A stretch of 64,000 nucleotides of DNA from Oculina patagonica (GCF_052425735.1 NC_135770.1:26846001-26910000), one strand, 5' to 3'. Shown: positions 2,821 to 63,488, counted from the first letter of the stretch. Numbers and translations are program-made. The notes: generated by a model from the letters alone, not told the origin.

Positions 2821-3513
2821 ATTATCAACCAAGTAAAAGCAAATGAAGTTGAATTATGGGTATTGTATACACTCTACAGATCCCATTCTTGGCGACGAAT
2901 TAACATAATTATTATTTAACTCCAAAAAAGCTTAGCTTTCTTGGTTTGCAAATTTTGTTGAAGAACTATTATTTATGCTCTTCAACGTAACTGGTTAGTT
3001 TACAAGAAACGTCACCATCCTTTGCTCTCAAGTAACGATTTGATTGCTTAATTCTGTTCCATGTGACTCGGTTCTAGTAATCACACTGTGAACTTATGCA
3101 AAAAAACTAAATAATCAGATGCGACTTATTCGATTGGGCGACTGGGCTTGCTAGTTTTAATATTATGGACCGTTTCCTGCATAACAATGCATAAACAAAA
3201 CTCTCATCTTCGTTTTGCAGCGTGCCTGCGGGCACTTATTACATGGGGTATTACCGATGAACATCGATCCAAGAATGGTGCACTTCCGCTTGTTCGAATG
3301 TAATTCACTCGAAAACTGAAAAATTTGTTTCCAGCTTGGGGTGGAAATGAAGGTAACGGAAACTAAAAGAATCCAGTACAACAAGGAAGTGACATTCAAC
3401 CCCATCGCTACCAGACGTTTTCCTGTCTCGCTCTCCTCAACGTCCGCGACGGTTTTCTTTGCATAAGTAGACCAGGTAAAATAAAATCAAGCACGATGAC
3501 TAATTCAACTCAC

Positions 3514-3636
3514 CATTACAAGATTTGCCATCACCGGTGTACCCCGCATTACAAGCGCAAGTAAAAGAAGCCTCAGTATTAGTGCAGGTCGCCGACAAAT
3601 CACAGTCGTGAGTATTGGTAGTGCATTCATCTATGT
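3514..3636 (-). CDS. Gene A exon: calcium-binding EGF ([12 protein letters not shown]...GYTGDGKSC)
   Basis: 123 bp, phase 1-1, AG acceptor and GTGAGT donor. Confidence 0.9.
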
Positions 3637-12600: not shown

Positions 12601-12693
12601 CAGGAGAGCCAGTCAGTCGGCCCTTTCGAGAGTCTGTCCGTCCGCCCGTCCGTTACGCTGTTAGTCAATCGATCAGTGACATCAGTCGATCAG

Positions 12694-12765
<72 letters not shown>

Positions 12766-15106: not shown

Positions 15107-15142
<36 letters not shown>

Positions 15143-20059: not shown

Positions 20060-20074
20060 ATGTTATTCGAAAAC

Positions 20075-20116
20075 ATGCGGAAACATTCTCTATTTGAAGC
20101 GCATCTTCCGGTCCTT
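20075..20116 (+). CDS. Gene B first coding exon ([14 protein letters not shown]; alternative in-frame ATG at 20060)
   Basis: ATG...CTT then GTAAGT, phase 0. Confidence 0.6.
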
Positions 20117-23100
20117 GTAAGTATTCTGCATTTTCTTGGCTTTTTATTTCTTGTTTTTGTGTTCACGCATTGCATTTATATGCTTAGATTTCAAAACTGT
20201 ATTAAACTTTGCACATTAATGTAAATAGCAGCAGCACTGTAGCTTGGATCATATCCATTCATTCAATTATTTCTCTGTTAGAAAATTAACACGAAAATAA
20301 TCGTACCGTTTAAGACCAGAATTTCATTTTGACATGTTTTTATGTTGAGTATTTTCAATAGGCAGTATGCGGTAAGAGCGCGCGGTTAGCAAAATATGCT
20401 TTACACCAGATCAGTATAACAACGTTCTTTTACAATACAAACACCGGCAAAATTGGCATTAAAATCGGTGAAGTCGTACGTTACTAAGTGATGAATATGA
20501 ATGAAATACATTTTGTTAAAACTCTTACGCACTTTATCAACAGCTAAAAATTAGTTTACCAAAAGAATTCACAGTAGAATTGAGAAAACTTGTTTATTTA
20601 TCTATTTAATTTTTTTTTTTTTTCAAATTGGAGTTCATTTTGAACATAATCACAGTTTTATAGTATCTGAATACTGTCCTGAATTGGAAAGTTAATGTTT
20701 CGTTCGTCAATTTTTCCTCAAGATGTAAAGTATTTTAAAACTTAGTATGATATCAATCAAGAACAGTAAGCAACTATCATGTCACAAATTGATTAAAATT
20801 GAGGGGAAGGGGGAAGGGAGGGTGAGGGGATGAACATCAAACGAAACTCAAAGTTGTCCTGAATAAGAAGATAGCCTGTGTGTATAAGTCCCCTTTCCGT
20901 CAAAATCCCAATTTATTTTAACAAGAGGGATAATTATAATTAAATATAACTGTACAACAAAAACAACAATTTTGAAGAGTTGTGTCTTATGCTACCGTTT
21001 CGCGATCGAGCGCTTTCCTTCGGTGTCATGTGAACTTCGACTTTTATTCCTTTTGTGCCGCCTTAGCAATTAGTTTTTTTGGGAAACATGTTCTATTTAT
21101 GCTAAATAATCAAAGATTTGGCTGTGGGCACCTTAATCGTTGAAAATAATTTTTCTTTGGTGATCACGGTTCGTTCGTCCTTCTTCATGGTAAAAACAAT
21201 CCAATTTTTTTTTCCAGTTAGCGGAAACGCTCAGAACCAGGGAAAGCGTGTGTTTAAAAGAGGTTTTCCCTTAGAAGAGGTAAAAATGCAGTAGTTTTGT
21301 CCGGTCACAACCACAGAGGAGTGACCGCTAAAGACAGGAGTACCCCTATTATTTTCGAAGTCGAAATGAAGAAAGATTAAGGTAACGAGGTAACTTGTTT
21401 TGTTTGCTTTTCCTACGTAGGTTGTACAGCTTGTTTTGCTCATCTCCTCGTCGACCTTAGCTCAACAAGGTATACATCAAAACAATCACTTATATTCATA
21501 AACTATACTGTATTTATGTCCAATTCCGCTACAACGAATGTAAAATTGACAAAAAAACCATGCGAAACCGGCTGTTACTCCAGCAAGAGCAACTGTTAAA
21601 CATTACACCTATCATAGGAATAAAATAAACGATCCACTTTAATCTATCTATCTATCAATTTTCTAACCTTAATTGAAATGCGTATTGTTGATAATTTATT
21701 GAATAATAAACAGTTATCCTGCTCGATCTTGTGAAATATCTTCTGATTCTAGCGAACTTGGCCTACAGCCTCGTCGGCTAAATAAATCAGGCGTTATTCC
21801 GCGCGATTTCGCAGGATAATTGTTAATTATTTTATGACACAACAATTTAGAGTGTGATAAAAGTCTAAACTCCCTCTCTCTTTGCAATTTAGAATGCAGC
21901 GAATACATCAACATAACTGACAACAGTAGATCAGTTAGTGCGACGGGCTTAAGACTTTGTGACTCTGGCGCAGTGTGGACCACCAATAACGATTGGATCC
22001 GCTTTCCTATAAGTGGTGAAACATGGATGCCGGAATATTGCCCACCAACGCACGCCTGTAATACGGATGCGCCAGGTTGGTTAAGTGGCAGTCATCCTGC
22101 GGTGGAGGATGGGATTGTTCAGCGTCGAGTTTGTTTTCACTGGAGTGGTGATTGTTGCATGTGGTCTATAGATATACTAGTTCGAAACTGCAGAAAGTTC
22201 TTTGTGTATCAGCCATTATTTCAAGTACCAACCTGTTGGCTACGTCTTTGCGTTTCACATGGTGAGTTACTTCACAGTCAGACACTTTCAGTTCAAATCG
22301 CAAAATATTTCTTCCTCTTTTTTTATATAACTTTCTTTTAATGTTAGCTCCGAGAATTTGTTGATAACTCCCCATAGCTGATGGTTATCTTCATTCTCAT
22401 CACCCTTCGGCTTAACAACATAGTGATATTGTTAGGAGAAATTTGAAGTTGATCAATCTTTGGAACTGGACAGTTGAAATCAATTTTCGATCAGGTATTA
22501 ATTGATTGCATTTTCAAGGTCAATGTGAATGGTGCAGAAGGCAATCATTTCATACTTCTCTGATGAAATGAATACTCCTTACCTCATGACCACAATAATT
22601 AATGTCACCGTTACTCAAAAGTCTTATGCTTCTTCCCGCTGGGGACTCCTTCCCGCTGGGGACTCCTTCCCCCAGGACTCCTTGCGCTGCCGGCCTAAAT
22701 CCTTAACCTTTTATAGACTATTTTTGACAGAAAATGGGAATCCTTTCATATTCTTTCCGTAGAAAATGGTACCCCTTTTATCTACATACAGTAGATATCG
22801 TCTCTTTTGCAGGGTTTATTTTAGTAACAACTTAAAATACTTAGATGTATCAGCCGTTAGCAGGAGCCGTTAGTTGCGCCTCTTTAACATATTATAACTA
22901 AATTCATATTATAACTGTTCGTCAGAAGTACACAGTTCTTGGACACAGCGTCGTCGTTAATGTCAGACGACAATGAACCCTGTTTACTTGATAAGATTGC
23001 AGTTGTCTGCTGCGCCTTAACAAACTGTTGCAAGTCAGTAGTTGCATCAGATTATGAGTCCTCAATTCAAGATATTTGTCAGCTGTACATTCCAGGAACA

Positions 23101-26100
23101 TTTTAAAGATTTCATTTAGTTTCAGCATTGTCCTTAGGCTAAGGGGACTAAAAAACAATTCAGAGGTTGTCTGTGGCGAATAAAGAAATAAAGCTATTTT
23201 TATCACAAATAAAGTTGTGAGTAGACTACTCCAAATTTAAGAATCAAACCCCAGTTTCTTTTCTTTTCTAGTAATCCACTATTTTATCTCAAGCAAATAA
23301 TTTATGGATCTATTTTGTCAGACTTCAAATTATGTAGAGGTTTTTACAGGCAGTTTTTTTCTAAACATGCAAACTGAACCACTGCAAACTAACACCAGAG
23401 ATTTGTCATCTTTCACCCTACAGTAACAGATTAGTTTGCTAGCTGATTGAGTATCAGAACGAACTTTGTTCTTTTGGTTGTGTATACCACTTGGCTAATA
23501 ATTCAGGCAGGATAGCAACCTTGTACACCTTATTGGCCTTTGATAAGTTTGTGTTAAAAAAATCATTGTCACGTTTAATCATCTCTATGTGCAAGTCCTG
23601 TTCTGTCCACACAACAAAGTGCGCAAACTGAAATCCTGTGACATGCACTTGCACCTGTGTCCAATATGGGTGTGTTTTCTTGAGAGTAAGACCACCATCG
23701 GGAGACTGCTCCAGGCAAAGCCTGTGATGATTTCCATCGACAGCCTCAGAGAGAACTTGGTCGCGTACACAGAAGGGGCACTTGACTTCCACACACCAAG
23801 TGCCAAGACAGTCGCAAGAAGCAATGGCATCTGGTGTTGCCCCAATGTGTGGGTTGTCTGGAGAAATCCTTAAACCAGTTGGCTTTAAAGTAAAATTCTG
23901 ATGGGATCTCTCCATGGTCTGTTACAAAAATACATAATAAAAAAGAGAGAGGTTTAGCCATTTAGTTTCATCTTTTCCATAAAAATACATAACTTTCATT
24001 ATATTGTCATTATTGGAAAAAAGGTGCGGCTTATCTGCGGGTTCTTACGATATTATAAATAATAAGAGCCATTGATATTTAGAAATTCTAATAGTTAGTC
24101 ACAATTATCAATCATATCAAAATTACTAAATACATTATGCTATAGTTATTTCACTAAGACCATCTGGCAATGTGAGTGTCTGATTACACGTGCAGTTAAG
24201 AATACACTTTGCAAAAAATAGTATTTGCAAAAATACACAAAAAATTGAGAATAATAAAAAAGAATTTTCTTTTCTTCTTGCTTCACTATATTGTCTCCAG
24301 ATAAACAACAGTATAATGATATATTAAGTATATTCGTCCAGAGCCTTTTTCTCTTTCCGGCATCCCCAGTCTGTGGCAGCAGAATAACATTTAGATCCAT
24401 AGCAGATCTGTTTGATGAGACTAACAGATGGTTTTGCAGGATCAGTATGGCATGTTGTATGTTGTATGTTGTAGAAATTACTTGCAGTGATTCTTACAGA
24501 TCTCATTTTTGCCCAAACCTCAGAATTTCTCTGTTCTCTTGTTGCTTCCTCAACGTCGATTGCTTGTTCTTTACTACAAGATATCTCTTCAAACACTTCG
24601 TCTGCCTTTTTCAGTAAGTCATTAAAGCTTAGATTGCTCAGCTGTTCAGAGTAAAGTTGATCAAGAGTGTTTGGCAAATTAAGGACAGGTTTCTTGGGAA
24701 CATATTCGTTGCTGTATGGAGACACAAGGGACAGTATAGCAGGCTTTGTTCGTGAAGCATGCAAGCGTTCATAAAATGTTTTGATTTGGTCTGTGGACGG
24801 ACCATACGCAGATCTTGGTTTGGCTGGAGTTGGTTGGCAGGCAGTCCAGAAATTCGTTCATCTAGCCTCCTTTTTTTGGTGGCCGAAGCAGTGAAATCGA
24901 TTTATTTAAGTTCAGCATATGTTACTGACAGCTGAGGGCATAAGCCACTGGCAAGGCGCTGAAGTGCAAGTTCTGGCTTTGATCATTCTTACTCCAGCCT
25001 CAACTGCAAATAGCATAGCGCCAACATGCGAGCAAACCTCTCCAAGTCCGGCCATGCAGTTGCAATGTCCCGTAAGGACGTTCCCATTTGTTTTGACGGC
25101 CAGCCACGGTTTTAAAGGTGCCTTACTAAGTCGCTGAGAGTGGTTTACCTTAAATTAAATTAATAAAGAAATGTCAGATAAACAGCAGCGAACGAACAGC
25201 AGAATAAAACAGCGATCCATCTTTCATAAAAATTAATAATGTTGTAGTGAAATCAACATCATCATACCAGCGATGTAACAAATATCTTACTACGTGTTTG
25301 TCTTACCTTTCCGATCAAAATTCTTGTGTCTTGGGTAGCTTTTCCAACGAACATACTTCTCACCAAGCCAGCAACGAAGTATTGGTAGGACTGAAGACTT
25401 TTGTATGCTTTGACTTGTTCCTTTGTAAACTTGCTCGTTGAGAAGAGCAAGTAGTTCACTATATCAGGAAACTCGATCTCTGGCCATTCGGTCATGGATT
25501 GAGAGAAAACATTAGCACTCACAGAGTAGGGATCGATTCCTGCGATAATTTTCAGCTTCTCGTCGTACATTTGTCGGTTCTCGGCACTCAGAGAATCCCG
25601 GTGACCGCCCTCGACAGCCGCCATGTTGTTTTGACCTGGCATGCAAGATGGCGGCGTAGTAACGGTTGCTACGGGATCACGTGACCCGTGCAAAACCTCT
25701 ATACTTTTATTAGAGTAACATTACAATGTGTGTTCTTTACCACGGCATAAAAAACACTGTTTCAACCAACTTTGGTAATTGCAAATCTTCCAGATGGTGA
25801 TGATTTAGTATCGGACTTTGTTTATTTTCAGACGTTCACCCTTGCATCTCTAAACTTCATGAATGTGATCTGCAGTCTTCTTACTGCAATGTGACTGGAA
25901 ACAACTCGTACTCTTGTCCTTGTAAAACGGGATTCAGTGGACTTCCAGGAAATTGTTCAGGTACTTAAAATTTTAAATAAGTTATTTCGTGCCGTCTAGA
26001 AATGCGTCATCTTTCAAATAATATGTTTTTAGAACTCAATCATTTGACTTCCTTTACCAAAAGGTAGTAAACTACTACATATAACATAGAAAATAATGTA

Positions 26101-29100
26101 TTTATTTCACAACATTTATTTGCTAGGCAAAATCATTATTAGAAATAGAACACTGTGTGGTAAAAACTATTACGGGCTCTAAATCATGTAATTTTGGCGG
26201 GTTTTTTTCACGACCCGTCAACGACAGTTCCTGCCTCCTGCGAAAACTCGCTAATTCTGAGCTTGTATACCAGGTACGCATCGTTCGAATATCCATGACG
26301 TGGTGCAATTGTATTGGATTGGCTTATGCATTACCTGAACAACTTACCACTGAAGGGTATCGAAATATTACGCTTTACTTGCAATTTTACGCGACTTCTT
26401 AATTTCGCAAAAGAGAACTATTTGCAGGAACATAGACCTTAGACCAATAGACCTTTTTCGCTCGGGCTTTTTGTTGCCTCATTACAGACCATGTGATGAT
26501 ACTCTTGAGAATTCTTGCTTTCAAATTTTCAAATAGTCGCGTGTATATGAATGAATAAATTTTATGTCGATAAAAGAAAAATTTTCTAGAGAACATCACG
26601 TGGTCTGTAATGGGAAAACAACCCGCCCAAGCGGATAAGGTGTTTTATCTCCAATTGCAAAATCGTTTGCAACACGAAAGGTCCATTTTTCTAAACACGA
26701 GGTAGCTACAGCCAAGATCAGAAGATGAGGCTGCGCAAACTTCGAAAAGTCAGCCACGAAAAAAGAACATGTCTGTACAAGTGAGGCTAAAGTCTAATAC
26801 TAAGCGCTCTGGCAGTATTTAAGTTTGTAACATCGGTGTATTCAGTCAGTTGCTTTACGTAATAAAACACAAAACCTATCTTTACAGATGTGAACGAGTG
26901 TGAAAATGGACTTGACAGTTGTGACGTCATCTCTACTTACTGCGTCAACACCATTGGGTCGTACTATTGTCAATGTCGTGAAACGGGGTTCACAATGAAT
27001 GGACAAATCTGCGAAGGTATTCAAAAGTATTTTTTCACGTTTTATTTTAAAACATTATTATCGTTACAGCCGCCCGTTTAGATCATAGATACATGGCGTA
27101 CGCGGCAGTGAATAGCCCAATTTCGTTATATTAAAATTCAGCCTAAAACAGTAGGGGTTTATTCCCCAGAGCCTCGTAGTTATGTCTATTGTTTTAGGGT
27201 GAATTTTAAAATATCAAAATTGGGTTATTGTTGTTATTTTAAGGTGAACTCTTTTCTAGGCTACCTTATTCTTACGGGTAAGCTTTTCATTTGCCCGAAC
27301 CCAAGCTCCTCAGGTCGTTTTTTCAGTGCGTTGATAGAATTAACGGCCACATGTTGCAACCCAAAACTTTTTATAAGTTAGCCTAAAAGTACGGCGACTA
27401 GAAAATTAGTACGAAGGACTTATTGCAAATGACAAAAAGGAAAAAACACTAGCACAACACACCTTGAAAACGGCTCACAGCGTGGCCGAATGCTTTAACT
27501 GGATGCGTTATCTGGAAGCCCTAAGTCAAATCCTCCACCATGCTACTAGCTGGATTTGCTGTTGATAATCCCAAGTTTTACACTTCGGCCGCGTTTTTTA
27601 AATAGCTAACTGAGCTGTGTCCCACAATATATACCTGAAAAACACTATATACAGTGCTTCGCTCCACGCTTTTAACTTCTAACCCACACACAATCCCAAT
27701 TATCCCGTTTTGTTTTTCTCTTTAGACGTCGATGAGTGTTTGACGGGCGACCATCAATGTCCATCCCATTCTGCCGACTGTTTCAACAATGAAGGCTCGT
27801 ACAGCTGTGAGTGTAAGCAGGGATACACTGGAGATGGAAGAAACTGTTCAGGTAATTAATAATTTGTTGAACTCAGTTATCGCAAGTACTTTTTATCACT
27901 AGTATAAATTGCACATAGTTTTCCGACAACTCTCAAAAACGAGCTGGCATTTTTCTCAAAAGTGGACACAATTTCACTTGAGCAGAATATTGATTGCCGC
28001 AAAATCACTGTCAGACTCTAGTGCGCATGACTCACCTACAGCGCAAGAGAACGTAATTTGAGGGATTATGCATCAAGTTTTCTTTGCCCCGCGAACGTCA
28101 AAACTTTTGCCCTTTTTAAGATTGCCGTTTATACGTCAAAGTGAGTAGTTTCGTATTCTTATTTTCCTGATGGATTTTTTCAATAATTAGAGAAGACGCT
28201 GACAGAAACAGGAGCTTTCTGACGTTTGTCGTTTGCAATAAATGTTAATCTCTCCACTGTCTTTCCGGACAGATGGTTGCTAACAATGGTTATCAGTAAG
28301 GGTACGGTTATCACTGGGGATTTTGAGATACCTTGCCTAGTTCCTAGGCCTTCCATATTCGCTCCCGTCGATCCGTTTAGGATCACGTGGTACGAGCGAA
28401 AAAACGACTCCAGCCGTTCTCCCCTGATACGTTACCGCAACGAGTAGTTACATTACACCATACTGTAAAAGCCTGGGGAAAAAAGCCATATGAATTAGGC
28501 AATGAGATACCTAAACCGGCCATTTGTGACAAGGCTGAGTTACAGACATATGAAATCATTTGTATTTGTTTGTTTGAAAGAATTAACCCTTCCTGTGTGT
28601 TCAATCCAATATGCAAATATCAACTTGATGTCAGAAACACCCAGTTAAATACTTTCTTTAAAAAAAGTAAACCCGCCCCGTTCAGTACAAAATGAGTTGA
28701 TAACAGAGGGTTGTGTAACATGAGCGAACTGAAATTTAATCTTCTTTGGCATATTAAAAAAGGTAAAGAAAATTGAAGAATAATTCATCAGATCGTAGAC
28801 CTTTCGCGGCCACTTTGCGTAATGACAAAAAAAATGAATTTGGAAGAGAATCATTTTTCTTCCTTCCCCAAAACGTTCAGCAAAAATATGCTACCAAGAT
28901 TCGAATTGAAACAGAGACTTTATAATTTGTGTGTGCAATATTTTATTGCACATGGTAAATGCCATTTCGGTTTTATTTTCGAGTGTTCCGATAAAAGTTT
29001 TCCTCGTTCGCAATAGAACATTTTTTCGGTGCTTTGCCTTGAAGCTCAACAACAAAAAGCGGTAACGGTCAAGGATTTGAGTACAACATGTAATTTAAGT

Positions 29101-32100
29101 ACAAAATAAAGGACAAGCAAAATTTGCCAGCATGTTTCACAAAGTCGTGAGAAACTTTCTCCGCGGTACAATGCGAACTGTTCTTCATAAGCGCGATCAC
29201 TAAATAATTACTCAAACCGAACGCGTGGAAACGATCTAAGGAAAAATTATGGTAGAAATAAATTGAAATAAATGCTATCATATAATTTATTACATAACCT
29301 GTTTTTTTTTTAACATTGGAAATGTCAAATTACAAATACTCTTCTGCTTTCTTCTCGACTCTGTTACGAGTGTAACATTATTTACAAATGGCCTTGCCTA
29401 CGCAGTACACCGACTTAAGCAGTGTTTACTTAATCCGAAAGCATGTATTATCTTAAATGATCTAAAACTGTAAACAGTTTTCAGTAAGTGTCAGTAACAG
29501 CCATCACTTAATATTCAGGATGTCTCATGAGTTCGCATTTAGCGTTGATTTAGATCACATCTATGGCGTTACTGGGAGAGATATTTCCTTGTCCCTCTTC
29601 TTGTTGGTTGATGTCTCGTTCCTGTCCAGTTTGAACAATGCCCACAGCGTTTGGTGATCCAAAAACACGCATCTCGATCTGTTCCGCTTGTGTGTAACTT
29701 TTTCTTAACAAAATTTCAAAGAACGCTACACGAAATCGCCTTATTCTTGCAGCGTAAATTATTGGATTAATTAACGAATTGATAACTGGGAGAAAACCTC
29801 CAACGAAAAAAATTATATAAGCAACATTCAATGAGACTCTAGAAACAATTATTCGAACGACAAATATTGGTGAATAACATAACAGCACTGCGACAACGAT
29901 AAACGTTGTCAATTTTAAGGCCTTCTTTTCTTTTAAGAATTTTTGTCTGGCCTCTGCGGACACTTGCTGGGAGAGAATTTCTTTTTCATGCCGACGAGCT
30001 TCTCTGTAAAGTACAAACTGTCCTATGATAATGATGGCTAGACACAGAACCCAAGCTGCGTTGTTTACGAAAAGAAAGACATCATTATCTATGACGATAG
30101 GAATTATAGTTATTAATAAGATTGTGACCCATGCAAGAACGGAGGCGAGCAGAATGCGGCCTTCGGTGACAATGGTTGTGTACTTGTACGGGTGATAGAG
30201 AGCTAAATATCGTTCCCCGCTCATTAAAACCAAGTGAATGAGCGATGATCCGTATAACAACCTCGACACATTTCTTACTGTCGCCTGAAGTATACATGAT
30301 TCACTTGACGAGTCGCCTTGAAGGATGAATATTACTAGTGGTATCTGCAAAGGTTGAACAATCAGCCCCACCATCGTGTCTGTAGCCGCTAGACACGCCA
30401 CAACGACGTTGGACATCGTTCTCAAGCGCGGTTTGGTTTTCACGGCGATCATCACCAACAGATTGAGTACAATTGTGAATGGAAACGTCACACTGTTGAT
30501 TACGGCGGACGAAACCAAGGTAGCATAAACTTCAGGAGTTATATGGTCAAGTTTTCCTTTGAGGAAAACGTAAATTTCACATTCGGCAGGTATCGCCGGG
30601 GAAGAAACTTCGCTTGAATTCATGATTTCGCTTTGTAGATCTTGGTCTTGATACAATAATGTTGATTTTTCCGTGCTCACAAACAGTGGTTCTTCTTTTA
30701 TAAGCGTTTCTTTATACTTTCTTTTTTATGTTTTTTCCGCTCTCGCATTTGCATTTTATCTATGTTATGTTTTAAATGGGGATAAGCAGTCGCTGCTTTT
30801 TAGCGAAGCTAAGACGCACGTTTCTCTTATTTAAAAGGTTTTCAGTACTTCCTTTTATTGTTCACTCCTCGACTTCCAATAAAGCGTCCTCGGAAAACAG
30901 ACCTAATTAGACATCTTGGCAAATCCATCATGAAAACACGATGTGGGTTGATTGAAAGGAACGCAAATGCAACGGATGTTAATACACAATGACCTGGTTA
31001 CGAAAAATATCGAGCCATTGAAGGCCAATTATTGTAAAAGACCCAAACTTCGAATCCAAACCAGTTATTTACAATAGACTTTTCAAAGCGCATTACCCTT
31101 TAACTGATTGGGAATATTATTTGCGACACAAATTTAAACCATTATTAAATACAATTTCAGTTTACAAACATGGAGAAAATTGAGGCAGTACAAGGTAGTA
31201 GTAAAGGTAGTATCGGTGTACACAGAGACTGAGTCAGTCTTCACTTGCAATTAACAACTGCAGCAAATCTGGCCACTCAAGAATTGGCCAAGAAAACCAC
31301 AGCACGCGCTGCAATGCTACTACAAGACTAATCCACGGCGCAAAAAAGCATAATTTTCACTCGAACCAATGCAGTGATTTGGCACATTAATAAAATAAAA
31401 AAGAAAATAAATAATAATTCATCGAGTCGAAGATAAATAAACAAGATATTTTCAGTTTACCTTTATAAATTATCATTTTTCTGCCGGTCGAAATAACAAA
31501 AACAATCTCCTCGAAACGTTCAACAGAAACATGCTGCAAGATTCAAGTGAAAATTGGCAAGTTGTAATTTGTTTGTCCAATATTTTATTGTACAGGATAA
31601 GTGCAATATTTTTTTTACTTTGAAGACACGAATTTAGCATCAGGTTTTCACCGTTCGCAATCATACATTTTTTCGGTTCTTTGCCTTGAATCTCAACAAA
31701 ATGTGGTGAAGGGGAAAGTTTAGGATTTAAGTGCAAATATGTTTTAAAAAATGAAGCACAAGACAAATTTGTCAGTATGCCTTACAAAGTCAAGAAAAAC
31801 TTTTTCCAGGTTTTTCTCCTGGGGCGAAATACGAACTTGTTCTTCATTCTTGCCATCACTAATAAGCAATCACTTAAATCGAACGGAAGAGAATGATCAC
31901 AGGGTAAAACATTGCAAAGAAAATTGAAAAATGGAATAAATTCAGTCATATATTTTATTACATCACCTGTTCTTTTTTTAACAATACTCTTCTACTTTCT
32001 TTTCTACTCTGTTAAGAGTGATATGGCCCGCTTAGATGATCTAAAATTGTAAACAGTTTTCAGTTAGTGTCAGTTACAGCCATCACTAAATATCCAGGAT

Positions 32101-35100
32101 GTCTCATGTGTTCGCATTTAGCGTTGGTTGATCTTGTTCCTCGGCTGTATTTGACATCATTGTCTATAGGTTTGGAATCACTTCTATGGCGTTACTGGGG
32201 ATGATATTTCCTTGTCCCTCTTCTCTCTGGTTGATGTCTTGTTCCTGTCCTGTCTGAACAATGCCCACAGCGTTTGGTGATCCAAAAACACGCATCTCGA
32301 TCTGTTCCGCTTGTGTGTAGCTTTTCCTCAACAAAATTTCAAAGAACGCTACACGAAATCGCCTTATTCTTGCAGCGTAAATTATTGGATTAATTAACGA
32401 ATTGATAACTGGGAGAAAACCTCCAACGAAAAAAATTATATAAGCAACATTCAATGAAACTTTGGAAATAACTATTCGAACGACAAATATTGGTGAATAA
32501 CATAACAGCACTGCGACAACGATAAACGTTGTCAATTTTAAGGCCTTCTTTTCTTTTAAGAATTTTTCTCTGGCCTCTGCTGAAACTTGCTGTGAGAGAA
32601 TTTCTTTTTCATGCCGACGAGCTTCTCTGTAAAGTACAAACTGTCCTATGATGATGATGGCTAGAAACAGAACCAAAGCTGCGTTGTTTACGGAAAGAAG
32701 GACATCGTTATCTATGACGATAGGAATAGTTAATAATACGATTGTGACCCATGCAAGAGCGGAGGCGAGCAGAATGCGGCCTTCGGTGACAATGGTTGTG
32801 TACTTGTACGGGTGATAGAGAGCTAAATATCGTTCCCCACTCATTAAAACCATGTGAATGAGCGATGATCCGCATAAAAACCTCGACACATTTCTTGCGG
32901 TTGCCTGAAGTATACATGATTCACTTGACGAGTCACCTTGAAGGATGAATATTACTAGTGGTACCTGTAAAGGTTGGACAATCAGTCCCACCATCGCGTC
33001 CGTAGCCGCTAGGCACGCCACAACGACGTTGGACATCGTTCTCAAGCGCGGTTTGGTTTTCACGGCGATCATCACCAACAGATTGAGTACAATTGTGAAT
33101 GGAAACGTCACACTGTTGATGACGGCGGTCGAAACCAAGGTAGCATAAACTTTAGGAGTTATATGGTCAAGTTTTCCTTTGAGGAAAACGTAGATTTCAC
33201 ATTCGGCAGGTATCGCCGGGGAAGAAACTTCGCTTGAATTCATGATTTCACTTTGTAGATTTTGGTCTTGATACAATAATGTTGATTTTTCCGTGCTCAG
33301 AAACAGTGGTTCTTCTTTTATAAGCGTTTCTTTATACTTTCTTTTTTATGTTTTTCCGCTCTCGCATTTGCATTTTATCTATGTTAAGTTTTAAATGGCG
33401 TTAAGCAGTCGCTGCTTTTTAGCGAAGCTAAGACGCACGTTTCTCTTATTTAAAAGGTTTTCAGTACTTCCTTCTTTTGTTCACCACTCTCCTTTCAATA
33501 ATGCGTCCTCGGAAAACCGACCTAATTAGACATCTTGGCAAACCCATCATGAAAACACGATGTGGGTTGATTGAAAGGAAGGCAAATGCAACGGATGTTA
33601 ACACACAATGACCTGCTCACGAAAAATATCGAGCCATTGAAGGCCAATTATGCTAAATAACCCAAACTTCGAATCCAAGCCAGTTGTTTTGAAAAATACT
33701 TTTTTGAAAAGCAATAGCTTTTTACTGGTTGGAAAAGATTATTTGGGCCACGAATTAAGAGCCATTTATTAAGTTAAATTCCAGTTTACAAACAAACATA
33801 CATGCCTACATGTAGCATGATGGGTAAATAGACCTAAACGCTTTTTTTAGTTAATGCTCTTGAAGCCTATCACTTTACTCTAATTTATAACGGTGAAACC
33901 TCATCATTCAATTGTTGTCATCATTCTTAAAAAAATTAGCTGATAATAGAGGTTTTTTTGTTTTTTGTTTAGCACGGGCATGAGATTCCCACTCTTCTAT
34001 TTTGGTAATTTTTTTTAACATTGTGTTTATGTATCGCAGAAACTATGAGAAATTAATAAAAAATTAAAATTTTACCAAAATAAGATAAAAAATCTTCTTC
34101 CAGCGAGTCAATCTAGTATACTGTTTTGCAAACAGTGCTACAGTGCTCTGTTTCTTCTTCAGCTGCCCTGAAATATTGGCAAAACATTCCAAGATTTCTT
34201 TTTTTAAATTTCGAAGTGTGAGCCAGAGTTCCGCTTCTTGATCGCTCCTTCAATCGGCAAAGCGATGTTGACTAGCTATTTCGTCAGGTTGCGAGGTTTT
34301 TTGTTTCGCCCGTCTTCTATCCCATTCATGAACAACATCGCATTTTAACTAATCAGATCCCTACACGAAAGCATCTAATAGCTATCTCATAGTCATAAAA
34401 AACTTAATGTGAAGTTTTTATGTCGTTCAGATGGTTCGAATCCTGCTCGGGGCATGCAATTTTTCTTTCATTTCAGAGACGTGTGTCGAAAGCCATCTGT
34501 AATTTATTTACATATTTCTTTTTATGTCGTTCTTATTCAGGATTTGTTGTACATGAGCAGACTGTATATAATTTAAGAGTTATGTTCATTTCAGGTGATT
34601 CACTGTGCCGTGAACATTTTTATTTTCGCAACAGATAAATAGAAATATAAATGGTACTTTTATAAAATGATAAATAATAATATGATAACTTCTACTGATA
34701 GCTACTGATGTTTAAAAAAAAGAATGTTTGAGTCCTATTTTGGTGGGTAATTTTCAACCTTCTTTTTTATTTGTTTGTTATATTAAGATGTTTTCTTTGT
34801 ATACACACTCGCCTAAAGGCTCGTGTGTATACTGAAAATCAAGTCACTCGTGGAATCTTTCACGGTATGCCACTCGAAAACATTGCATAACTAGTATGTA
34901 TCCGCCATGTTAGAGGAGAAATTTTGCTTGCAAGGGTTTGTGGGACTTCAGTGCACGTGATAGACTTGTTTCAGGTTTGCAAACCTCCTTCGCAGTTATG
35001 ATTTTCTTTGTTTTAACTTGATGAATGATTGATGAGTTTAAGAAAAGTTAGTTCGGCGAATTTAGTGTTACGACAAATTCAACAGCAGTTCGACGAAAAT

Positions 35101-38100
35101 AGTGTTTCGACGAATTCAACAGTTCGATGAACTTGCAATGAGGCTTCGATCACTTCCAAATCAGTTTCGATGAATACCACCTTCTGACGAATTCAGTGTC
35201 TCGATGAAAAAAAAAGTTCCGAAAAATTCGATAAATCCAATCAATTTAATCGAGTATTCAATAATTTCAATCGAGAATTTAAATGAATTCAAACTTTTGG
35301 TAAATAATAGTTTTAGTAAATTCACAAGATCGAATTTTTAACCCGATATTAAAAAGCCCTTTCATGCACAGCCATTTCGCGTTATAAGAAAAAGATGAAT
35401 TTAAAAGATATATTTTTCACATCTGAATAATATACATGCATATATTTTAGCATGCTCCTTGACTGAGAGCACGTCAATTAATCGCAAACAGTGCAGAAAG
35501 TTGAAATTGAGTGCAAAAAGTTGAAACTGAGTGCAGAAAGGTGAAATTAAATTGACTGACAGGAGTCGCGAAAGCGCGCCAAGACAAAATGACGGCCTTT
35601 GTCAGAGGGTTTAAACAATGCAAAAACATATTGATTCATGCAAAGTTTGATCAATTTAACGCAAATAATTAGTATATAAACCAAAGAACTAGTAAATGGA
35701 CGTTTTGCAGTTCAAGAGAGGCTTTACGAAACTACTGAAAGCTACCAAGCGAGGATTTTCTTACGCGGCAGCTCGTAAAGAAGGAAGATTACAAGCCAGA
35801 ATTCAAATTAAGCATTTTGTTCTTCACCTCCCGCTTCGAACAGCTTCGCTAATTGCGGGAGGTGAAGGACATTGTATATTATATGAGTGTGTAAAATAAA
35901 GTTTTGTCGTTGTCGTTCAGTACAAAATGAATTGACAACTTTACATTCATGATCAAAGAGTTAGTTAACACCATAAGCGCACTAAAAATTGAATAGCTAA
36001 GTTTTTAAACTTCCTTGACATATCAAGGCGTATGTACTTGCAACATATACGTATAGCCGTTGCATTTGCCTGTTGAAATTTTTTATTGTTTTCGAGCTAA
36101 CAAAATTTGAAGAAAACTAAAGAATTATTCATGAAGTCGAAGACCTTTCATAGTCACTCATTAGCCATGCACTTCGAGGATAATAAAGAGATAAAGTTGT
36201 GTCGCAAATAATCTTTTCCAATCAGTGAAAGGAAAATACGCTTCTGAAAAGTCTATTCAACTGGCTTGGATTCGAAGTTTGGGTTATTTAGCATGATTGG
36301 GTTTCAATGGCTCGATATTTTTCGTGAGTAGGTCATTGTGCATTAACATCCGTTGCATTTGCCTTCCTTTCAATCAACCCACATCGGGTTTTCATGATGG
36401 GTTTGCCAAGATGTCTAATTAGTTCTGTTTTCCGAGGACACATTATTGGAAGGAGAGTGGTGAACAAAAGAAGGAAGTCCTGAAAAACTTTTTAAAAAGA
36501 GAAACGTGCGTCTTAGCTTTGCAAAAAGCATTGAACTGCTAACACCATTTAAAACTCAGAATAGATAAAATTCAAATGCGAGAGCGGAAAAGTATTTAAA
36601 ACAAATCTAAAAACGCTTATAAAAGAAGAACCACTGTTTGTGAGCACGGAAAAATCAACATTATTGTATCAAGATCAAGATCTACAAAGTGAAATCATGA
36701 ATTCAAGCGAAGTTTCTTCCCCGGCGATACCTGCCGAATGTGAAATCTACGTTTTCCTCAAAGGAAAACTTGACCATATAACTCCTGAAGTTTCTGCCGC
36801 CTTGGTTTCGACCGCCGTCATCAACAGTGTGACGTTTCCATTCACAATTGTACTCAATCTGTTGGTGATGATCGCCGTGAAAACCAAACCGCGCTTGAGA
36901 ACGATGTCCAACGTCGTTGTGGCGTGTCTAGCGGCTACGGACACGATGGTGGGGCTCATTGTCCAACCTTTGCGGATCCCCGTAGCGATATTTACCCTTC
37001 AAGGCGACTCTTCAAGCAAATCATGTTCACTTCAAGCAACAATAAGACATTTGGCGAGATTTTTATGCGGATCATCGCTCATTCACTTGGTTTTAATGAG
37101 CGGGAAACGTTTGTTAGCTATTTCTTATCCGTACAAGTACACCACCACCGTCACCGAAGGACACATACTGGTTGCCTCCGCCATTGCATGGGTCACAATT
37201 GCTTCAATTAGTTTTCCTACCTTCACTGATTATGATGCCCTTCTTTCCGTAAACAACGCAGCTTTGGTTCTGTTTGTAGCCATCATTATCACAGGCCAGT
37301 TTGTACTTTACAGAGAGGCTCGTCGGCATGAAAAAGAAATTCTCTCCCAGCAAGTGTCAGCAGAGTCAAGAGAAAAATTCTTAAAAGAAAAAAAGGCCTT
37401 AAAATTGACAACGTGTATCGTTGTCGCAGTGCTGATATGTTATTTACCAATATTTGTCGTTCGAATAATTGTTTCTAGAGTCTCATTGAATGTTGCTTAT
37501 ATAATTTTTTTCGTTGGAGGTTTTTTCCCAGTTATCAATTCGTTAATTAATCCAATTATTTACGCGGCAAGAATAAGGCCATTTCGTGTAGCGTTTGTTG
37601 AAATTTTGTTGCGGAAAAGCTACACACAAGCGGAACAGTTCGAGATGCGCGTGTTTGGATCACCAAACGATGTGGGCATTGTTCAAACTGGGCAGGAACG
37701 TGATATCAACCAGCAAGACGAGGGACAAGAAAACATCATCCCAAGTAACGCCATAGACAAGGATGTCAAATACAGCGGAGGAACAAGATAAACCAACACC
37801 GAACGCGAGCGTGTGAAACAGCTGTAATTTTCTTTAAATTAAAGTGTTGGCAATTATTGACAGTAACTTAAATCCGTTTACAAGTTCAAGTTATTTAAGA
37901 TAATAAATTCTTTCCCATGTGGTACACAATTTTTAAGTCGTTGTATTCAGCGAAATATGTAAAAATAATATTACAGTCCCAATAAAGTCCCAAATGCTCC
38001 AGGGCTCGAAGAAAAACTGACTAGTTGTTATAATTTGCATGATCAAAAATATGTTATTGCGCAGGATAAATGCATTTCGATTGCTCAGTTGTTCAAATAA

Positions 38101-41100
38101 ACGAATTCAGCAACATATTTTCCAGTTCGCAGTAAATGAATTATTTTCAAGACAGTTTTTGCCTGGAAGATCAACAAAAAGTGGTTACCATAGCCGTACG
38201 GACACCTTTCGACCTGGGGAGGGGGGGGGGGGGGAGACGGGGACGGAGACCTTATTGTCCGAAAAAAGACCATGCGTTAAAAGCCGGATAAAGAGGCACA
38301 TAAAGTGGACAACGAAACGTGCGTGAATTAAAAGAGTGGTATACAAACCTCTTCTGCTTGCTTAAAGGAAACGATAGTTTTGTTTTAATTTCGTGGTGTT
38401 GCCCGAAGATGTCAATGCACTGTATCCCTTTTTCGGAAATTTTTATTTATCCTCTCGAGTTCAGCAAAAATAAAAACTATTTTTGGGGAGCCAATTTAAA
38501 TTGTTTTCCCTCCCCCTACTTTAAAGTGATACAAAAGCGTGTTAAGAAAGTGTCCATCTGAAATCCATCAGTATTAACATTTGAGTCTACATCAATCCTC
38601 TCAGATTTCCTTTATATTTTGCACGGGGCTACAAATTGAGGTGAAAATATCATTAATTCGCAAGATTCTTTACGAATGAATGATATAGGTACCTATATAG
38701 CGCATTTACAAAGCTTAATAGGCTTTACAGTTACAATTTTATTTGATGAGACCGGACAATAGCATATCAGGCGCCTTTGGCAGCCACTATTCGTCCATAT
38801 ATATGATCTCATCACACCACCCAACCCATAGAATAGAAACAGACCACAACACCGGGAACTTCGTGCCCTACTCTACTCGCGCGATAGAGGTCAACGTGCC
38901 CATAGTCGGTTTTGAGCCAAACAATACCCACATTTTGACCTAACTTTCGACCAAATATCTCTGCACGCATTGAAGCTTTCCAAATCAAAACACCATTTTA
39001 ATTAACAGATTAAAATCACCCGATACAATTTTAATTATACCATCAAGATTTGGTAGTAAACCTATTTTAAAAATAGGGTCTAGAGAGGCTCCTGTAAAAA
39101 GACAATGATTTTAGTGTGAAATTACGTTTAAATTAATATCGCCGATGCGGCGTTATTCTAATGGTTCCATTAGCCATGATTTTGTGAAACATTTACCAAA
39201 TAATAAATTAAAGAGAAAAAAGTTTGTACAGTTCAAATGGCACGTATGATTTTAGCGTACTAAAATGTGCTACACGTGAGTACAATAAAAACAAAGTTCT
39301 GAAAGTTTTAGAACAAGTTTCATAACACGATGGATAGGTCGGCTGAAGACGTGAAACATAACGCTTAGATACAGTCAATAAAACTTGTAATATCTAAAGT
39401 GCCCTTAAATACAGACTTACGGCGTGAAAAAGGGTAGACAAGTCATTCGCCATGTTCATCATCGACTGACTTCAGGCGTATCCTCACGAGCAGTTTGATG
39501 CAGAAAGAGAAAACGTCGCTAACTTCTGTCTGCCAGGTAGTTATAATGTTCACAAACAATTCTGCAAGGCTTTAGATTCCACTTGTCTCATAAACGAAGG
39601 CCTCAGTACTTCACATTTTCAGAAGTCTGGTAAGTTACTTTTCACCCGGCCGGGCGCCATGTTGTGTTAGACTAGTACCCAGTCTCTTAAGACTTGCTTA
39701 AGTGCTCAATCAAAACGTTAACGTTGGATAGACCATTGTTTTTTCTGGAAGCGCAGTATTCAAGACAGAAAATTGTTTCACTGTCGTTCTCTGCGCAAAC
39801 AATTTTTCCGACTGCACCTTTCTGTTGGCAATGTTTCTTGATTTCTGCTAACAATTTGTTTGGGCTTTTTTGCTATTGCAAACAATTTCTTTTCAGGATT
39901 TTTAATCCCGCTCCTCCAAAAATTACTGTAATGCTTGAATTATAGCGTTGATGTGAAAACCATTCAAAGGCCTTGTTAACAAGATCGCGCAGTTCGATTT
40001 TGTTAATTACGGGTACTGGGATTACATACCCAACTGGACTTCACTCAGTCCTTATACACTGTGGCTATATTCACATCCTCTCTGGCTCCCGTTCATGCCA
40101 TATTGCAGATTAACGTGATATGTGGAATTTTTAAAGCAGCTTATACGCGAAATTACTTTTAAATTAACGTAAATGAACAAGGATAGTTATGAATGAAAAG
40201 AATCTGGACGGATAACGAAAGCCAAACTTGAGAAAATAAGTCTCTCTTCAAGATGCGCTAGCTGAGCATTCTTGCATTGATCGCTTAAAAGTGGCGATGA
40301 GTATCATCACCAACTGAGGTACGTGTTATGCTATGTGCCAGACATCTCCGGTGCACCGCCATTTTAAATGCGAATCAAAGGGGCCTAAGGACAAGGTTGT
40401 GATGGTATGAATGTCGTCGTCACTTTGTTTCAAGAATTATCTCTCAAAAGAACGCAGAATAACTTCTCAATTGTTCCTTATCTCTACTTATTCTTCATAG
40501 CGTGCGCGAGCACAAAATGGTGGGTTGGGTGGGGGTGTATGTTTTCATGTCGCTGACATATCGCAGATCTGAAAACCATAAACGCCAGACGAGACCGTAC
40601 TTGTAGAATATCGGCCCTCGTTCTTTTTTCTGTTTAGACTCCCAGAACGGCCCTTGCACTTGGTCAATAAGATGTATGTCGAGAGGCAGTGGTCAGGGGC
40701 AGGAGATCATCTTAAAATAACGCGTGATTGCTTATGCATTTCATGATTGTTCCAATCTTGTACTTCGAGTGCTCGCTCCTAACTGACAAACTGCACAAAA
40801 CTGACGCAACGAGCGACTATCGAGGGATTCGTTGCAGAATCAAGTACGTTTAGGTTTGCTTTTAAAATCTAGGCATGCACAGTTCAACCGAAAGTACGAT
40901 ATTTTCCGATTTCGTCTCCAGCGATGATTTTGGTCAGCACCAAGAATCGAGACCTTTGAGCGACACTGAAAGCCCGCCCAAAAGACGACCAAATCTGATT
41001 GGCTGTTGAAAACGTTTTCATTTCCATTTAATTTTCTAAAACGTCACATAAAAATGACAGCAAGTCTTCCTGTTAAATACATATGTCATGTATTTTCGGC

Positions 41101-44100: not shown

Positions 44101-47100
44101 AGGCTTCACAGTTACAATTTTATTGGATGAGACCGGACATCAGCATATCAGCCCTTGGCAGCCGCTATCCGTCCGTGTATATGATCTCATCACACCAGCC
44201 AACCCATAGAATAGAAACAGACCACAACACCGGGAACTTCGTGCCCTACTCTACACGAGGTCAACGTGCCCATGGTCGGTTTGGAGCCAAAAAATACCCC
44301 TGGACTTCACTCAGTCCTTATACACTGTGGTTATATCCACCTTCTCTCTAGCTCCTATTCATGCCATATTGCAGATCAATGTGCTATATGGAATTTTTCA
44401 AGCAGCTCACACACAAAATTCCTTTTAAATTAATTAAAACACCAATGAATGAGTGGTTATCTATTGAAAGCCAGATAAATAAAAGTTCACTTCCCATTTG
44501 TTTTCATACTGTTTGGGCACACCTTGCAGAAGTTGACATTATTTTCTGCTGAGTTGCAGAATTCATCAGATCAGAATTGCAACATTATTTCATTGCAAAT
44601 GTAAAGTGATATTTACAGCCTGTTTTGAAATTACTTCCGGTGGAAGCAATAAAAGCTGAAAATTTGTGTTTCCGTTAGAAGTTGAATGCATCGCCGTTAG
44701 AAAAAAGTAGCATCCATTTCACGGGAAATGTAGCCGTTAGCAATGGCATAAGTAGCCGTTACGTAAAGAATAACATGAGGTTAAGCGTCTTTTGGCAGTA
44801 TCCAATAGATCAGTGTGCCATTTAAAACTGTATCCATCTTTGCCTTGATCAAGTTGTTGAAAGTTCGTTTTTACTGACACTTCCATAATCTAGACTGCGT
44901 AGCAGGCGTACTCTTTTGATTGATTTTTTTTGTTTCCAGCTTTCCTGTAGCCAATTCTTACAATAAATGTAAATGAATGAAATACTGTAAATGATTTAAT
45001 AAACGCCAACTCTGAAAAAACGCCGCGTTTAAAAATCAAAAATAAAAAAAAATGGTTTCAAACATCAGCTGCTCTTTGCATTTTCGATGTTGGGAAAGTC
45101 AAATTACAAACATTTTTCTGCAGATTTCTGTTCAGATTTTATTGGGAGTGTAATATTATTTTACATATTTCGTTTGGGACAACGACTTAAAAATTGTGTA
45201 CCGCATGAAAAAGCATTCATTCAAATGACTTGAACTTGTAAACGGATTTAAGTTACTGTCAGTAATTGCTGTTTCATACGCTCGCGTCAACGTTCGGTGT
45301 TGGTTTGTCATGTTCCTCGGCTGTATTTGACATCCTTGTCTCGAGGTTTGGGATCACATCAATGGCGTTACTAAGGATGATGTTTTCTTGTTCCTCTTCT
45401 TGCTGGTTGATATCTCGTTCCTGTCCAGTTTGAACAATGCCCACAGCGTTTGGTGATCCAAACACGCGCATCTCCATCTGTTCCGCTTGCTTGTAGCTTT
45501 TCCGCAACAAAATTTCAAAAAACGCTACACGAAATGGCCTTATTCTTGCCGCGTAAATGATTGGATTAATTAACGAATTGATAATTGGGAGAAATCCTCC
45601 AACGTAATAAATTATAAAAGAAACATTTAATGGGACTTTAGAAACAATTATTCGAACGACAAATATTGGTAAATAACATATCAGCACTGCAACAACGATA
45701 AACGTTGTCAATTTTAAGGCCTTCTTTTCTTTTAAGAATTTTTCTCTGGCCTCTGCTGAAACTTGCTGTGAGAGAATTTCTTTTTCATGCCGACGAGCCT
45801 CTCTGTAAAGTACAAACTGTCCTATGATAACGATGGCTAGAGACAGAAGTAAAGCTACGGTGTTTATGGAAAGAAGGACATCATTTATAGCAGCGGAAAT
45901 AGGAAAACTAATTAAAGCAACTGTGACCCATGCAATGGCGGAGGCAACCAGTATGCGTCCTTCAGTGACGGTGGTGGTGTACTGGTACGGATAAGAAATA
46001 GCTAAAAAACGTTCCCCACTCATTAGAACCAAGTGAATGAGCGATGTTCCGCATAAAAACCTCGACACATTTCTTGCTGTTTCCTGAAGAATACATGATT
46101 CACTTGATGTGTCGCCTTGAAGGATGAATATCCCTACCGAGATCCGCAAAGGTTGGACAATCAGTCCCACCATCGTGTCCGTAGCCGCTAGACACGCCAC
46201 AACGACGTTGGACATCGTTCTCAAGCGCGGTTTGGTTTTCACGGCGATCATCACCAGTAGATTAAGTACAATTGTGAAAGGAAGCGTCAGAGTGTTAATG
46301 GCGGTTCCCGAAACCACGGTGGCATAAACTTCAGCAGTTAAATTGTCAGGCTTACAATCGAGTAAAGCATAGATTATACATCCGGCAGGTATCGCCCGGC
46401 GAGAAACTTCGGTTGAATTCATATCTTTGCTTTCTGGATCTGGTTTTTATAGAGTAATGTTGATTTTTTCGTGCTAAGCGATAACAGTGCTTCTTCTTTT
46501 ATAAGCGTTTCCTTAGACTTTTTTGGCTTTTTCGGCTTTTCCGCTATTGCATTTGCATTTCATCTCATTTAAGGAGGTGTTGGCCATTCTCTGCTTTTTA
46601 GCAGTGAATGGTTCGTTCCTCCTATTTAAAAAGTTTTTAGTACTTCCTTCTATTGTTCCCCCCTCTCTTTCTCATAATGCGTCCTCGGAAAAACAGTATT
46701 AATAAGACATCTTTGCAAATCCATGATGAAAACAGAATGTGAGTTGATTGAAAAGAAAGTAATTGCAACGGATGTTAAAACACAATGACCTGCTCACGAA
46801 AACATCGAGTATTTGAAGCCCAATAAAGAGCCTAAACTTCGAATCCAAGCTATTTGTATTCTAAAAGACTTAACAAACAAAGCATTACCCTTTTACTAAT
46901 TGGAAAAGATTATTTGCGACACAAATTAAGGGCCATTTATTAAATAAAATTTCAGTTAAAATACAAAGAAACAGGCTAACATGTAACAATGATGGAAAGA
47001 TGGACTTCAATATTCGGCTTTTAAACGTTGAGTTATTTCTTTACTGCACTGAATATTCCATTGAATATGACAGTAAAAATTATTACACATAATAACATAG

Positions 47101-63488: not shown

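Follow-up and report, generated by a model that had tools for sequence, protein, structure and literature searches.

The stretch of Oculina patagonica DNA analysed here (64,000 nucleotides in all, hereafter the window) is best explained as a whole by one transcription unit, of which it holds the 5' two-thirds and whose long product would be a polycystin-1-like (PKD1L/PKDREJ-type) 11-TM protein, a reading to which we assign a probability of about 0.7. In the predicted protein, a signal peptide would be followed by a D10C domain, five EGF domains (four of them calcium-binding), an F5/8C (discoidin) domain, REJ, GAIN/GPS, TM1, PLAT, TM2-5 and a TRPP-like six-TM region with a polycystin (TOP) domain. 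Proteins of the polycystin-1 family are poorly understood receptor/channel subunits with few known ligands. As far as its sequence can tell, the gene described here is a complete receptor/channel gene of this family.

An exact look-up of the encoded proteins placed the window on an O. patagonica chromosome of 38,349,888 bp (C13:26846001-26910000); it is gap-free and has a GC content of 35-42%. Exon borders were picked by GT-AG and phase, and the signal-peptide exons were placed via KAL9954070.1 (GenBank) and XP_078352367.1 (RefSeq). The joined model consists of 20 exons, each with GT-AG, and stays open over 2,658 aa. Exactly 14 of its coding exons lie in the window, on the + strand, with AG/GT borders and consistent phases:

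20060..20116, + strand: exon 1, start of the signal peptide (matches the start of XP_078352367.1 and KAL9954070.1)
21421..21469, + strand: exon 2, remainder of the signal peptide, phase-1 donor (KAL9954070.1, XP_078352367.1)
21893..22261, + strand: D10C (D8C_UMOD) exon, ten cysteines (Pfam, GP2/uromodulin structure matches)
25832..25960, + strand: EGF1 exon, phase 1-1 (borders confirmed by XP_078352367.1; weak Pfam EGF match)
26888..27016, + strand: EGF2 exon, calcium-binding, phase 1-1 (EGF_CA 26866-27078, E 1e-9; borders per XP_078352367.1)
27726..27851, + strand: EGF3 exon, calcium-binding, phase 1-1 (EGF_CA 27683-27856, E 3e-13)
27852..48300, + strand: long-form intron of 20.4 kb, between the EGF3 and EGF4 exons
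48301..48426, + strand: EGF4 exon, calcium-binding, phase 1-1 (EGF_CA 48300-48554, E 5e-14)
50594..50716, + strand: EGF5 exon, calcium-binding, phase 1-1 (EGF_CA 50593-50778, E 2e-12)
52408..52736, + strand: F5/8C (discoidin) exon a (F5_F8_type_C 52299-52790, E 4e-18)
53868..54006, + strand: F5/8C exon b (F5_F8_type_C 53868-54038, profile 86-127, E 3e-8)
55363..56227, + strand: REJ exon a (REJ 55350-56228, profile 5-209, E 6e-25)
58814..59423, + strand: REJ exon b (REJ 58761-59468, profile 209-414, E 1e-21)
62004..62186, + strand: exon 13, helical, between REJ and GAIN (phase-0 borders; conserved exon in a related coral)
63363..63488, + strand: exon 14, the last in the window, ending where the feature of the initial annotation ends

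The initial annotation, made from the sequence alone, had claimed 14 phase-compatible exons encoding D10C, five EGF, discoidin and REJ in that order. The count agrees with the model, in which the last exon of the window ends at 63488, and all the domains are present in the order claimed, in stop-to-stop frames of the + strand, as confirmed by Pfam, with EGF1 below the cut-off (Pfam EGF 25804-25965, E 2e-3). The D10C exon is matched by D8C_UMOD (PF23283; 21838-22338, E 2e-17, 63.5 bits). The F5/8C domain is complete, positions 1-99 and 86-127 of the PF00754 profile falling on adjacent exons with a phase-0 join, and its exon a has an alternative phase-1 acceptor at 52390. The two halves of REJ (PF02010) abut in the profile and score 88 and 77 bits (cut-off 25). 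Exon 13 was without a match in the Pfam scan.

Residues 1-286 of the model are 100% identical to XP_078352367.1, so that exons 1-6 are independently confirmed. The split of the signal peptide between exon 1 (to 20116) and the 49-nt exon 2 is seen in both database proteins. The ATG at 20060 is the RefSeq start and that at 20075 is the start kept in the related coral, where the counterpart of the upstream ATG runs into a TAA. KAL9954070.1 (94 aa) leaves the D10C exon at an internal GT, joins an acceptor at 23424 and ends there with VTD and a stop (23424-23434); it probably reflects a modelling error or else an aberrant transcript.

Beyond the window, a further 80 kb was fetched rightward (positions given here are the extended coordinate minus 64000), and six further exons were found within the first 8.6 kb:

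670-924 and 1710-2414 right of the window, + strand: two GAIN-region exons
3153-3386 right of the window, + strand: GPS (CLCNHLTSF) and TM1 exon
4075-5340 right of the window, + strand: PLAT and TM2-6 exon, 1,266 nt (PLAT E 1e-21)
5732-5900 right of the window, + strand: exon with the start of the polycystin domain, 169 nt (located via comparison with the related coral)
6566-8553 right of the window, + strand: last exon, 1,988 nt, with polycystin domain, channel and stop (Pfam)

The initial annotation had rested its PKD1-family assignment on REJ and the following helices, and had proposed extending the model rightward in search of GPS, PLAT and PKD_channel domains, the lack of which would have spoken against it. 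PLAT and PKD_channel are there, as is a GPS motif, and the assignment stands beyond REJ alone because exons for the GPS motif, TM1, PLAT, Polycystin_dom and PKD_channel follow. The last exon matches both Polycystin_dom (PF20519, E 3e-27, 96 bits) and PKD_channel (PF08016, E 4e-28, 99 bits), and PLAT (PF01477) scores 78 bits, with polycystin-1 structures matched at E 3e-34. The GPS motif CLCNHLTSF (HL^T) is intact at residue 1452, 37 residues ahead of TM1, with a Pfam GPS score of 20.5 bits that is below the cut-off of 22.5. A simple Kyte-Doolittle scan, which is not a trained predictor, gives about 11 hydrophobic segments in a 1 + 5 + 5-6 pattern: TM1 at 1489-1507, four segments within 1700-1853, S1 at 1898-1916, and then S2, S4, S5, a pore helix and S6, the S3 peak being weaker and under the hydropathy threshold. 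The channel exon matches the structures of PKD2L1 (E 8e-41), PKD2 and PKD1L3 (E 1.5e-28), and S6 is conserved (NMFVAILDDSY). Its contribution to a pore is uncertain, since the LGD of the PKD2L1 selectivity filter is replaced by GGN in the coral protein.

The fused model is weakest at the 20.4-kb intron that separates EGF3 from EGF4, where five GPCR genes lie:

29550-30680, 32164-33276 and 45274-46422, - strand: nested GPCR ORFs
36640-37791 and 41754-42929, + strand: nested GPCR ORFs

These are intronless, paralogous ORFs of the rhodopsin type (370-391 aa), and the three of the five that were tested match 7tm_1 at E 1e-22 to 2e-25. As for the halves on either side, phase compatibility is by itself weak evidence of linkage, because the introns of the D10C through F5/8C-a exons, and that at the end of F5/8C-b, are all phase 1. 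In RefSeq the head stands alone, as a 308-aa "uromodulin-like" protein (XP_078352367.1). The EGF3 exon is the branch point between this short form and the long one, the former continuing to an exon of its own:

28581..28648, + strand: last coding exon of the short form in RefSeq, followed by a stop (tail of XP_078352367.1; acceptor AG and translation checked)

The acceptor of this exon is good, its sequence is unique in the genome, and an ATTAAA lies at 28753, 105 nt past the stop. The short form may well coexist with the long one through this intronic terminal exon. A less probable reading, which we consider unlikely, is that there are two genes, one for a secreted protein of D10C and three EGF domains ending at 28648, and a PKD1-like one with its start ahead of EGF4 or EGF5; an ancestrally single gene would have been split when the GPCR cluster inserted. 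In favour of such a split are the XP_078352367.1 model, whose terminal exon and poly(A) signal are plausible, and the five unrelated genes present between the halves. The body would then need its own start and signal peptide, however, and no private first exon or signal peptide for it was found in crude scans of 43-48.3 kb (46.4-48.3 kb included), a kind of scan that also missed the true exon 1.

Contigs of four Logan runs (X1, X2, X3 and X13) were aligned to positions 22000-27999. Run X1 provided a contig over the D10C exon (100% identity, 22000-22163) and a second one of 233 nt, which lies on 27767-27851, stops exactly at the EGF3 donor and continues with ATGTTAATGAGTGCATCAGCGG, the same 22 bases with which the EGF5 exon begins (50594-50615). 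This EGF3-EGF5 junction omits EGF4, in frame. The joined 44-mer was not found in the genome, in which the EGF3 and EGF5 exons are also without near-identical copies elsewhere. Two artefactual origins of the contig were considered and rejected: it is not a misplaced EGF4-to-EGF5 contig, the tails of EGF3 and EGF4 being identical at only 60 of 85 positions, and a de Bruijn chimera at k=31 is unlikely because the longest run of bases shared by EGF3 and EGF4 is 14. The joining contig is a single one (n=1); it has a depth of 2.9, mismatches its locus at 4 of 85 nt and comes from a run that we only guess to be RNA. Its low depth would suit two genes, for which it would represent a rare read-through or conjoined transcript without a protein of consequence. 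In the same runs and region, EGF1 and EGF2 had no contig and no read linked D10C to EGF1; X2, X3 and X13 gave only repeat-derived contigs there. Two hairpin repeats (26446-26646 and 27111-27229) have high-depth contigs in all Logan runs. Another repeat of the window, at 62230-62630, is MITE-like (about 390 bp, with 35-nt inverted ends) and has more than 40 copies of 86-90% identity across all chromosomes.

The comparison with a related coral argues for a single gene. Its ENA contig ERZ25067872 ctg20911, reached via the last exon (77% identity), carries two tandem gene copies, each made of exon 1 (MRKYSIVEERLPVI), exon 2, D10C, EGF1, EGF4, EGF5, F5/8C a/b and REJ a/b and leading on to PLAT and channel. 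In these copies the part from D10C to REJ takes up 6.4 kb, free of GPCRs, and the exon 1 of the next copy lies about 3 kb past the stop of the previous one. Exon identities between Oculina and the related coral go from 60% (D10C) up to 95% (EGF4), with 78-90% for exon 2, 74-77% for EGF1, 93-95% for EGF4, 93% for EGF5, 73% and 74-80% for F5/8C a and b, 70% and 78-80% for REJ a and b, and 67-72% for exon 13. Over some 700 bp, the promoter and exon 1 are 74-76% conserved in both copies, only upstream of D10C.

Several features of these copies speak against two genes. The gap from EGF1 to EGF4, whose intron corresponds to the 20.4-kb one and is without GPCRs, is only 1.5 kb; the 90 bp ahead of the EGF4 acceptor are conserved, this region being kept as the acceptor of an internal exon; and neither the RefSeq terminal exon of the short form nor the rest of the long intron shows conservation in the related coral. 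EGF2 and EGF3 are without a counterpart in its contig. The simplest reading of these sequences is that a single gene would be the state shared by both corals, and the long intron with its GPCR genes, together with EGF2 and EGF3, all absent from the copies of the related coral, may be a change of the Oculina lineage.

Within the Oculina genome, four or more other loci have D8C upstream of REJ with the two on one strand:

from 15.9 kb inside the window to about 23.7 kb beyond its left end, - strand: left head-to-head paralogue, a D8C array, then REJ through channel
15399-15872, 14142-14702, 9804-10271 and 8079-8501, - strand: D8C exons of the left paralogue
C13:25.467 Mb: paralogue with two D8C and about twenty EGF exons, unbroken into REJ
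C13:25.52-25.53 Mb: paralogue with D8C upstream of REJ
C7:15.28 Mb: paralogue with D8C upstream of REJ

The D10C gene lying head-to-head with ours thus belongs to a paralogous polycystin-like gene, as its 5' end; in that gene four D8C and about eleven EGF exons are followed by REJ, GPS, PLAT and channel, without F5/8C. The D10C exons of the pair are 43% identical in a pairwise alignment and 50% by genome comparison, so the duplication is an old one; a recent mirror copy was also looked for and rejected, the inverted-repeat search having found only two MITE-like hairpins. Oculina is single-copy for this D10C polycystin subtype, as its D10C has no paralogue above 55% identity. A retrotransposon sits within an intron of the left paralogue (whose part in the window is 3503-15872, - strand), and long open frames (283 and 496 aa) of retrotransposon pol-like sequence lie at 1-2312 (+ strand), extending left, inside the intron of the neighbour gene.

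The paralogues back the link between head and body rather than prove it, because a duplicated two-gene unit would look alike. The initial annotation had also named, as a finding that would refute it, cDNA in which the D10C exon is not spliced to the REJ exons, and on such splicing the answer is divided: one EGF3-EGF5 contig, the co-orthologues and the paralogues are for it, and against it stands the RefSeq model, in which the head is a protein by itself and ends in a private terminal exon. From the X1 contig, the related-coral co-orthologues and the paralogous loci, we consider the linkage of the D10C head to the REJ body supported, not proven, and the existence of the long, fused product likely.

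The same annotation had called the ectodomain unusual. This holds in that the combination is new to the family; it is less unusual in this genome, where D8C, F5/8C and REJ are all hugely expanded and repeatedly combined. At least 110 REJ matches, or roughly 50 genes or more, are present, with a large cluster at C13:25.4-27.4 Mb, along with at least 318 D8C and at least 1125 F5/8C candidates. F5/8C also occurs a few kb upstream of REJ elsewhere (C13:26482405>26489666, C13:23794273>23801607 and C4:22228901>22236907). At C7:28855054-28892273 (+ strand), 34 or more near-identical F5/8C exons form a tandem array with a period of about 1,118 bp, which represents a single giant gene of many discoidin domains or else a recent tandem amplification.

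In public coral proteins, the partners of D8C are ZP, CUB, VWD, Ig/FN3, trypsin, 7tm_2 and F5/8C+VWA. When the D10C exon was compared with 1.84 billion representatives, the best 150 matches were multi-D8C, D8C+ZP, D8C+VWD and D8C+EGF proteins, and none had REJ; with the ranking by total score, a single-D8C polycystin could fall outside these 150, so that the result does not speak for its absence. A word-index search with a long multi-D8C query returned 31 coral proteins, none with REJ, under the same limits of ranking. In the ESM Atlas, REJ exon a found generic REJ clusters only. A separate search with the channel exon gave only single-exon ORF calls, which are uninformative on architecture.

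The D10C exon itself is clearly related to the decoy module of uromodulin and GP2. It aligns with 7P6R, a crystal structure of the GP2 decoy module, at E 9e-23 and with uromodulin at E 7e-21, with the ten D10C cysteines in register (model residues 37-156). In GP2 and uromodulin this module is bipartite, consisting of a beta-hairpin and D10C, and shows FimH a high-mannose glycan, attached at N275 in uromodulin (UMOD) and N65 in GP2; D10C there carries the glycan, and it is not described as being a lectin in its own right (PMC8930769). In the coral protein the beta-hairpin ahead of D10C is absent, nothing being encoded between exon 2 and the D10C exon, because D10C begins two residues after the predicted end of the signal peptide: its Cys1 is the second residue past the predicted cleavage (between TLAQQ and EC). 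The position of UMOD N275 reads Q (FFVYQPL), so the sequon is gone, and in place of the WLNGT sequon stands WLSGS. Where GP2 has N65, the coral protein has E, and an N-I-T sequon lies 3 residues later, 5 residues past Cys1; the exact C-x-N-Y-T (as C-I-N-Y-T) is found in the paralogue exon at 15399-15872. Zona_pellucida (the ZP module) had no Pfam match in any exon of the long or the short form, and other coral D8C proteins do carry ZP. The coral protein therefore resembles uromodulin and GP2 in its D10C fold family, as matched by sequence, in the ten cysteines and in the adjacent EGF domains, and differs from them in being without the beta-hairpin, the ZP module and the N275 and N232 sequons of UMOD.

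With PKD1L2, PKD1L3, PKDREJ and polycystin-1, the coral protein shares REJ, a GPS-type HL^T motif, TM1, PLAT, 11 TM, the polycystin/TOP domain and the TRPP-like last six TMs. Its ectodomain, in contrast, has no LRR, WSC, PKD repeats, C-type lectin or SUEL, and the head that replaces those of the vertebrate PKD1-like proteins is made of D10C, five EGF domains and F5/8C. Variable heads on a REJ/GPS/PLAT body, some of them lectin-bearing, are known from sea urchin SpREJ1-10 and human PKD1, PKD1L2 and PKD1L3, and SpREJ1 has an EGF domain together with C-type lectins (PMC1934368). The sea urchin family is thus similar in being a lineage-specific expansion of the PKD1 family with variable, partly glycan-binding ectodomains, but counts 10 genes, where Oculina has roughly 50 or more REJ loci, and uses CTLD, SUEL, PKD and WSC modules, with D10C and discoidin not reported there (PMC1934368). 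Among scleractinians, Acropora digitifera aug_v2a.02830, a PKD1 homologue of the skeletal proteome, is likewise a multi-pass REJ/GPS/PLAT protein with a conserved GPS site, whereas its head is a classical PKD1 one (WSC and PKD repeats) instead of the D10C, EGF and F5/8C of Oculina (PMC4890752). The diversification of coral polycystins has been noted and linked to calcification (PMC6208414). Our literature search turned up no paper that brings D8C or D10C together with polycystins. The D10C/EGF/discoidin head is then a new domain mix in a coral-expanded polycystin-1 family, lectin-tipped PKD1 proteins being already known, and the gene is, to judge from its sequence, one member of a small D10C-tipped subfamily within the large coral expansion.

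As for function, analogy with the polycystin family suggests that the ectodomain would probably be cleaved at HL^T yet stay attached, that the C-terminal six TMs would pair with PKD2-like subunits into a cation channel, and that a ligand or force acting on the large ectodomain would gate or tune this channel. The head is a set of exon-shuffled (phase 1-1) adhesion- or glycan-related modules, of the kind amplified hundreds of times in Oculina. The same promoter would probably also yield the short secreted protein of D10C and three EGF domains, via the terminal exon in the 20-kb intron. More tentatively, we propose that one promoter may serve two products, depending on which 3' end is used within the 20-kb intron: a secreted uromodulin-like D10C-EGF protein, as a soluble decoy or competitor, and a polycystin-type channel subunit with the same head, as its membrane receptor. 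A cluster of five chemoreceptor-like GPCR genes would then sit in the switch intron, and the D10C-tipped polycystins would make up a coral-specific receptor subfamily with at least five loci in Oculina.

The ligand is as likely to be a matrix, mucus or cell-surface glycoconjugate as a microbe. Matrix binding is typical of calcium-binding EGF and discoidin domains, and it is possible, if some way from probable, that the ectodomain acts as an extracellular-matrix, calcification or mechanical sensor, perhaps shed into the skeleton matrix. The intact GPS cleavage motif, the occurrence of a PKD1 homologue in the skeletal proteome of A. digitifera (PMC4890752) and the ties of diversified coral polycystins with calcification (PMC6208414) are consistent with such a role, although the A. 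digitifera skeletal protein has another ectodomain (WSC, PKD repeats).

The initial annotation had instead suggested that a D10C and discoidin tip catches bacteria or prey glycans, contact then gating ion flux, which seems to us quite improbable. suREJ1 does set off ion fluxes upon binding egg-jelly glycan. The idea draws on the homology of D10C with the FimH decoy module of GP2/uromodulin (PMC8930769), on the N-I-T sequon 3 residues from the GP2 N65 position and the exact C-x-N-Y-T in the head-to-head paralogue, and on the lectin domains of sea urchin REJ proteins as a precedent (PMC1934368). The known D10C bears a glycan rather than binding one, however, and the coral protein lacks the beta-hairpin, the sequon of UMOD N275 and the ZP module used for polymerisation; moreover, the presence of D8C and F5/8C says little about the ligand, since hundreds of unrelated coral proteins carry them. 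Microbe sensing is accordingly speculative, none of the sequence features examined appearing to favour a microbe over a matrix, mucus or mechanical role.

To our knowledge, D10C has so far been studied only in vertebrate filament proteins, and its use here as the tip of a membrane receptor would take it outside that setting. The nested genes of the long intron hold a lesson for annotation, as such genes can make pipelines split a receptor gene. More broadly, corals hold dozens of polycystin-1-family members with freely shuffled heads, the D10C/EGF/discoidin head widens the range known for this family, and the D8C-only, F5/8C-only and combined forms found in one genome constitute a natural series for the contribution of the ectodomain to gating.
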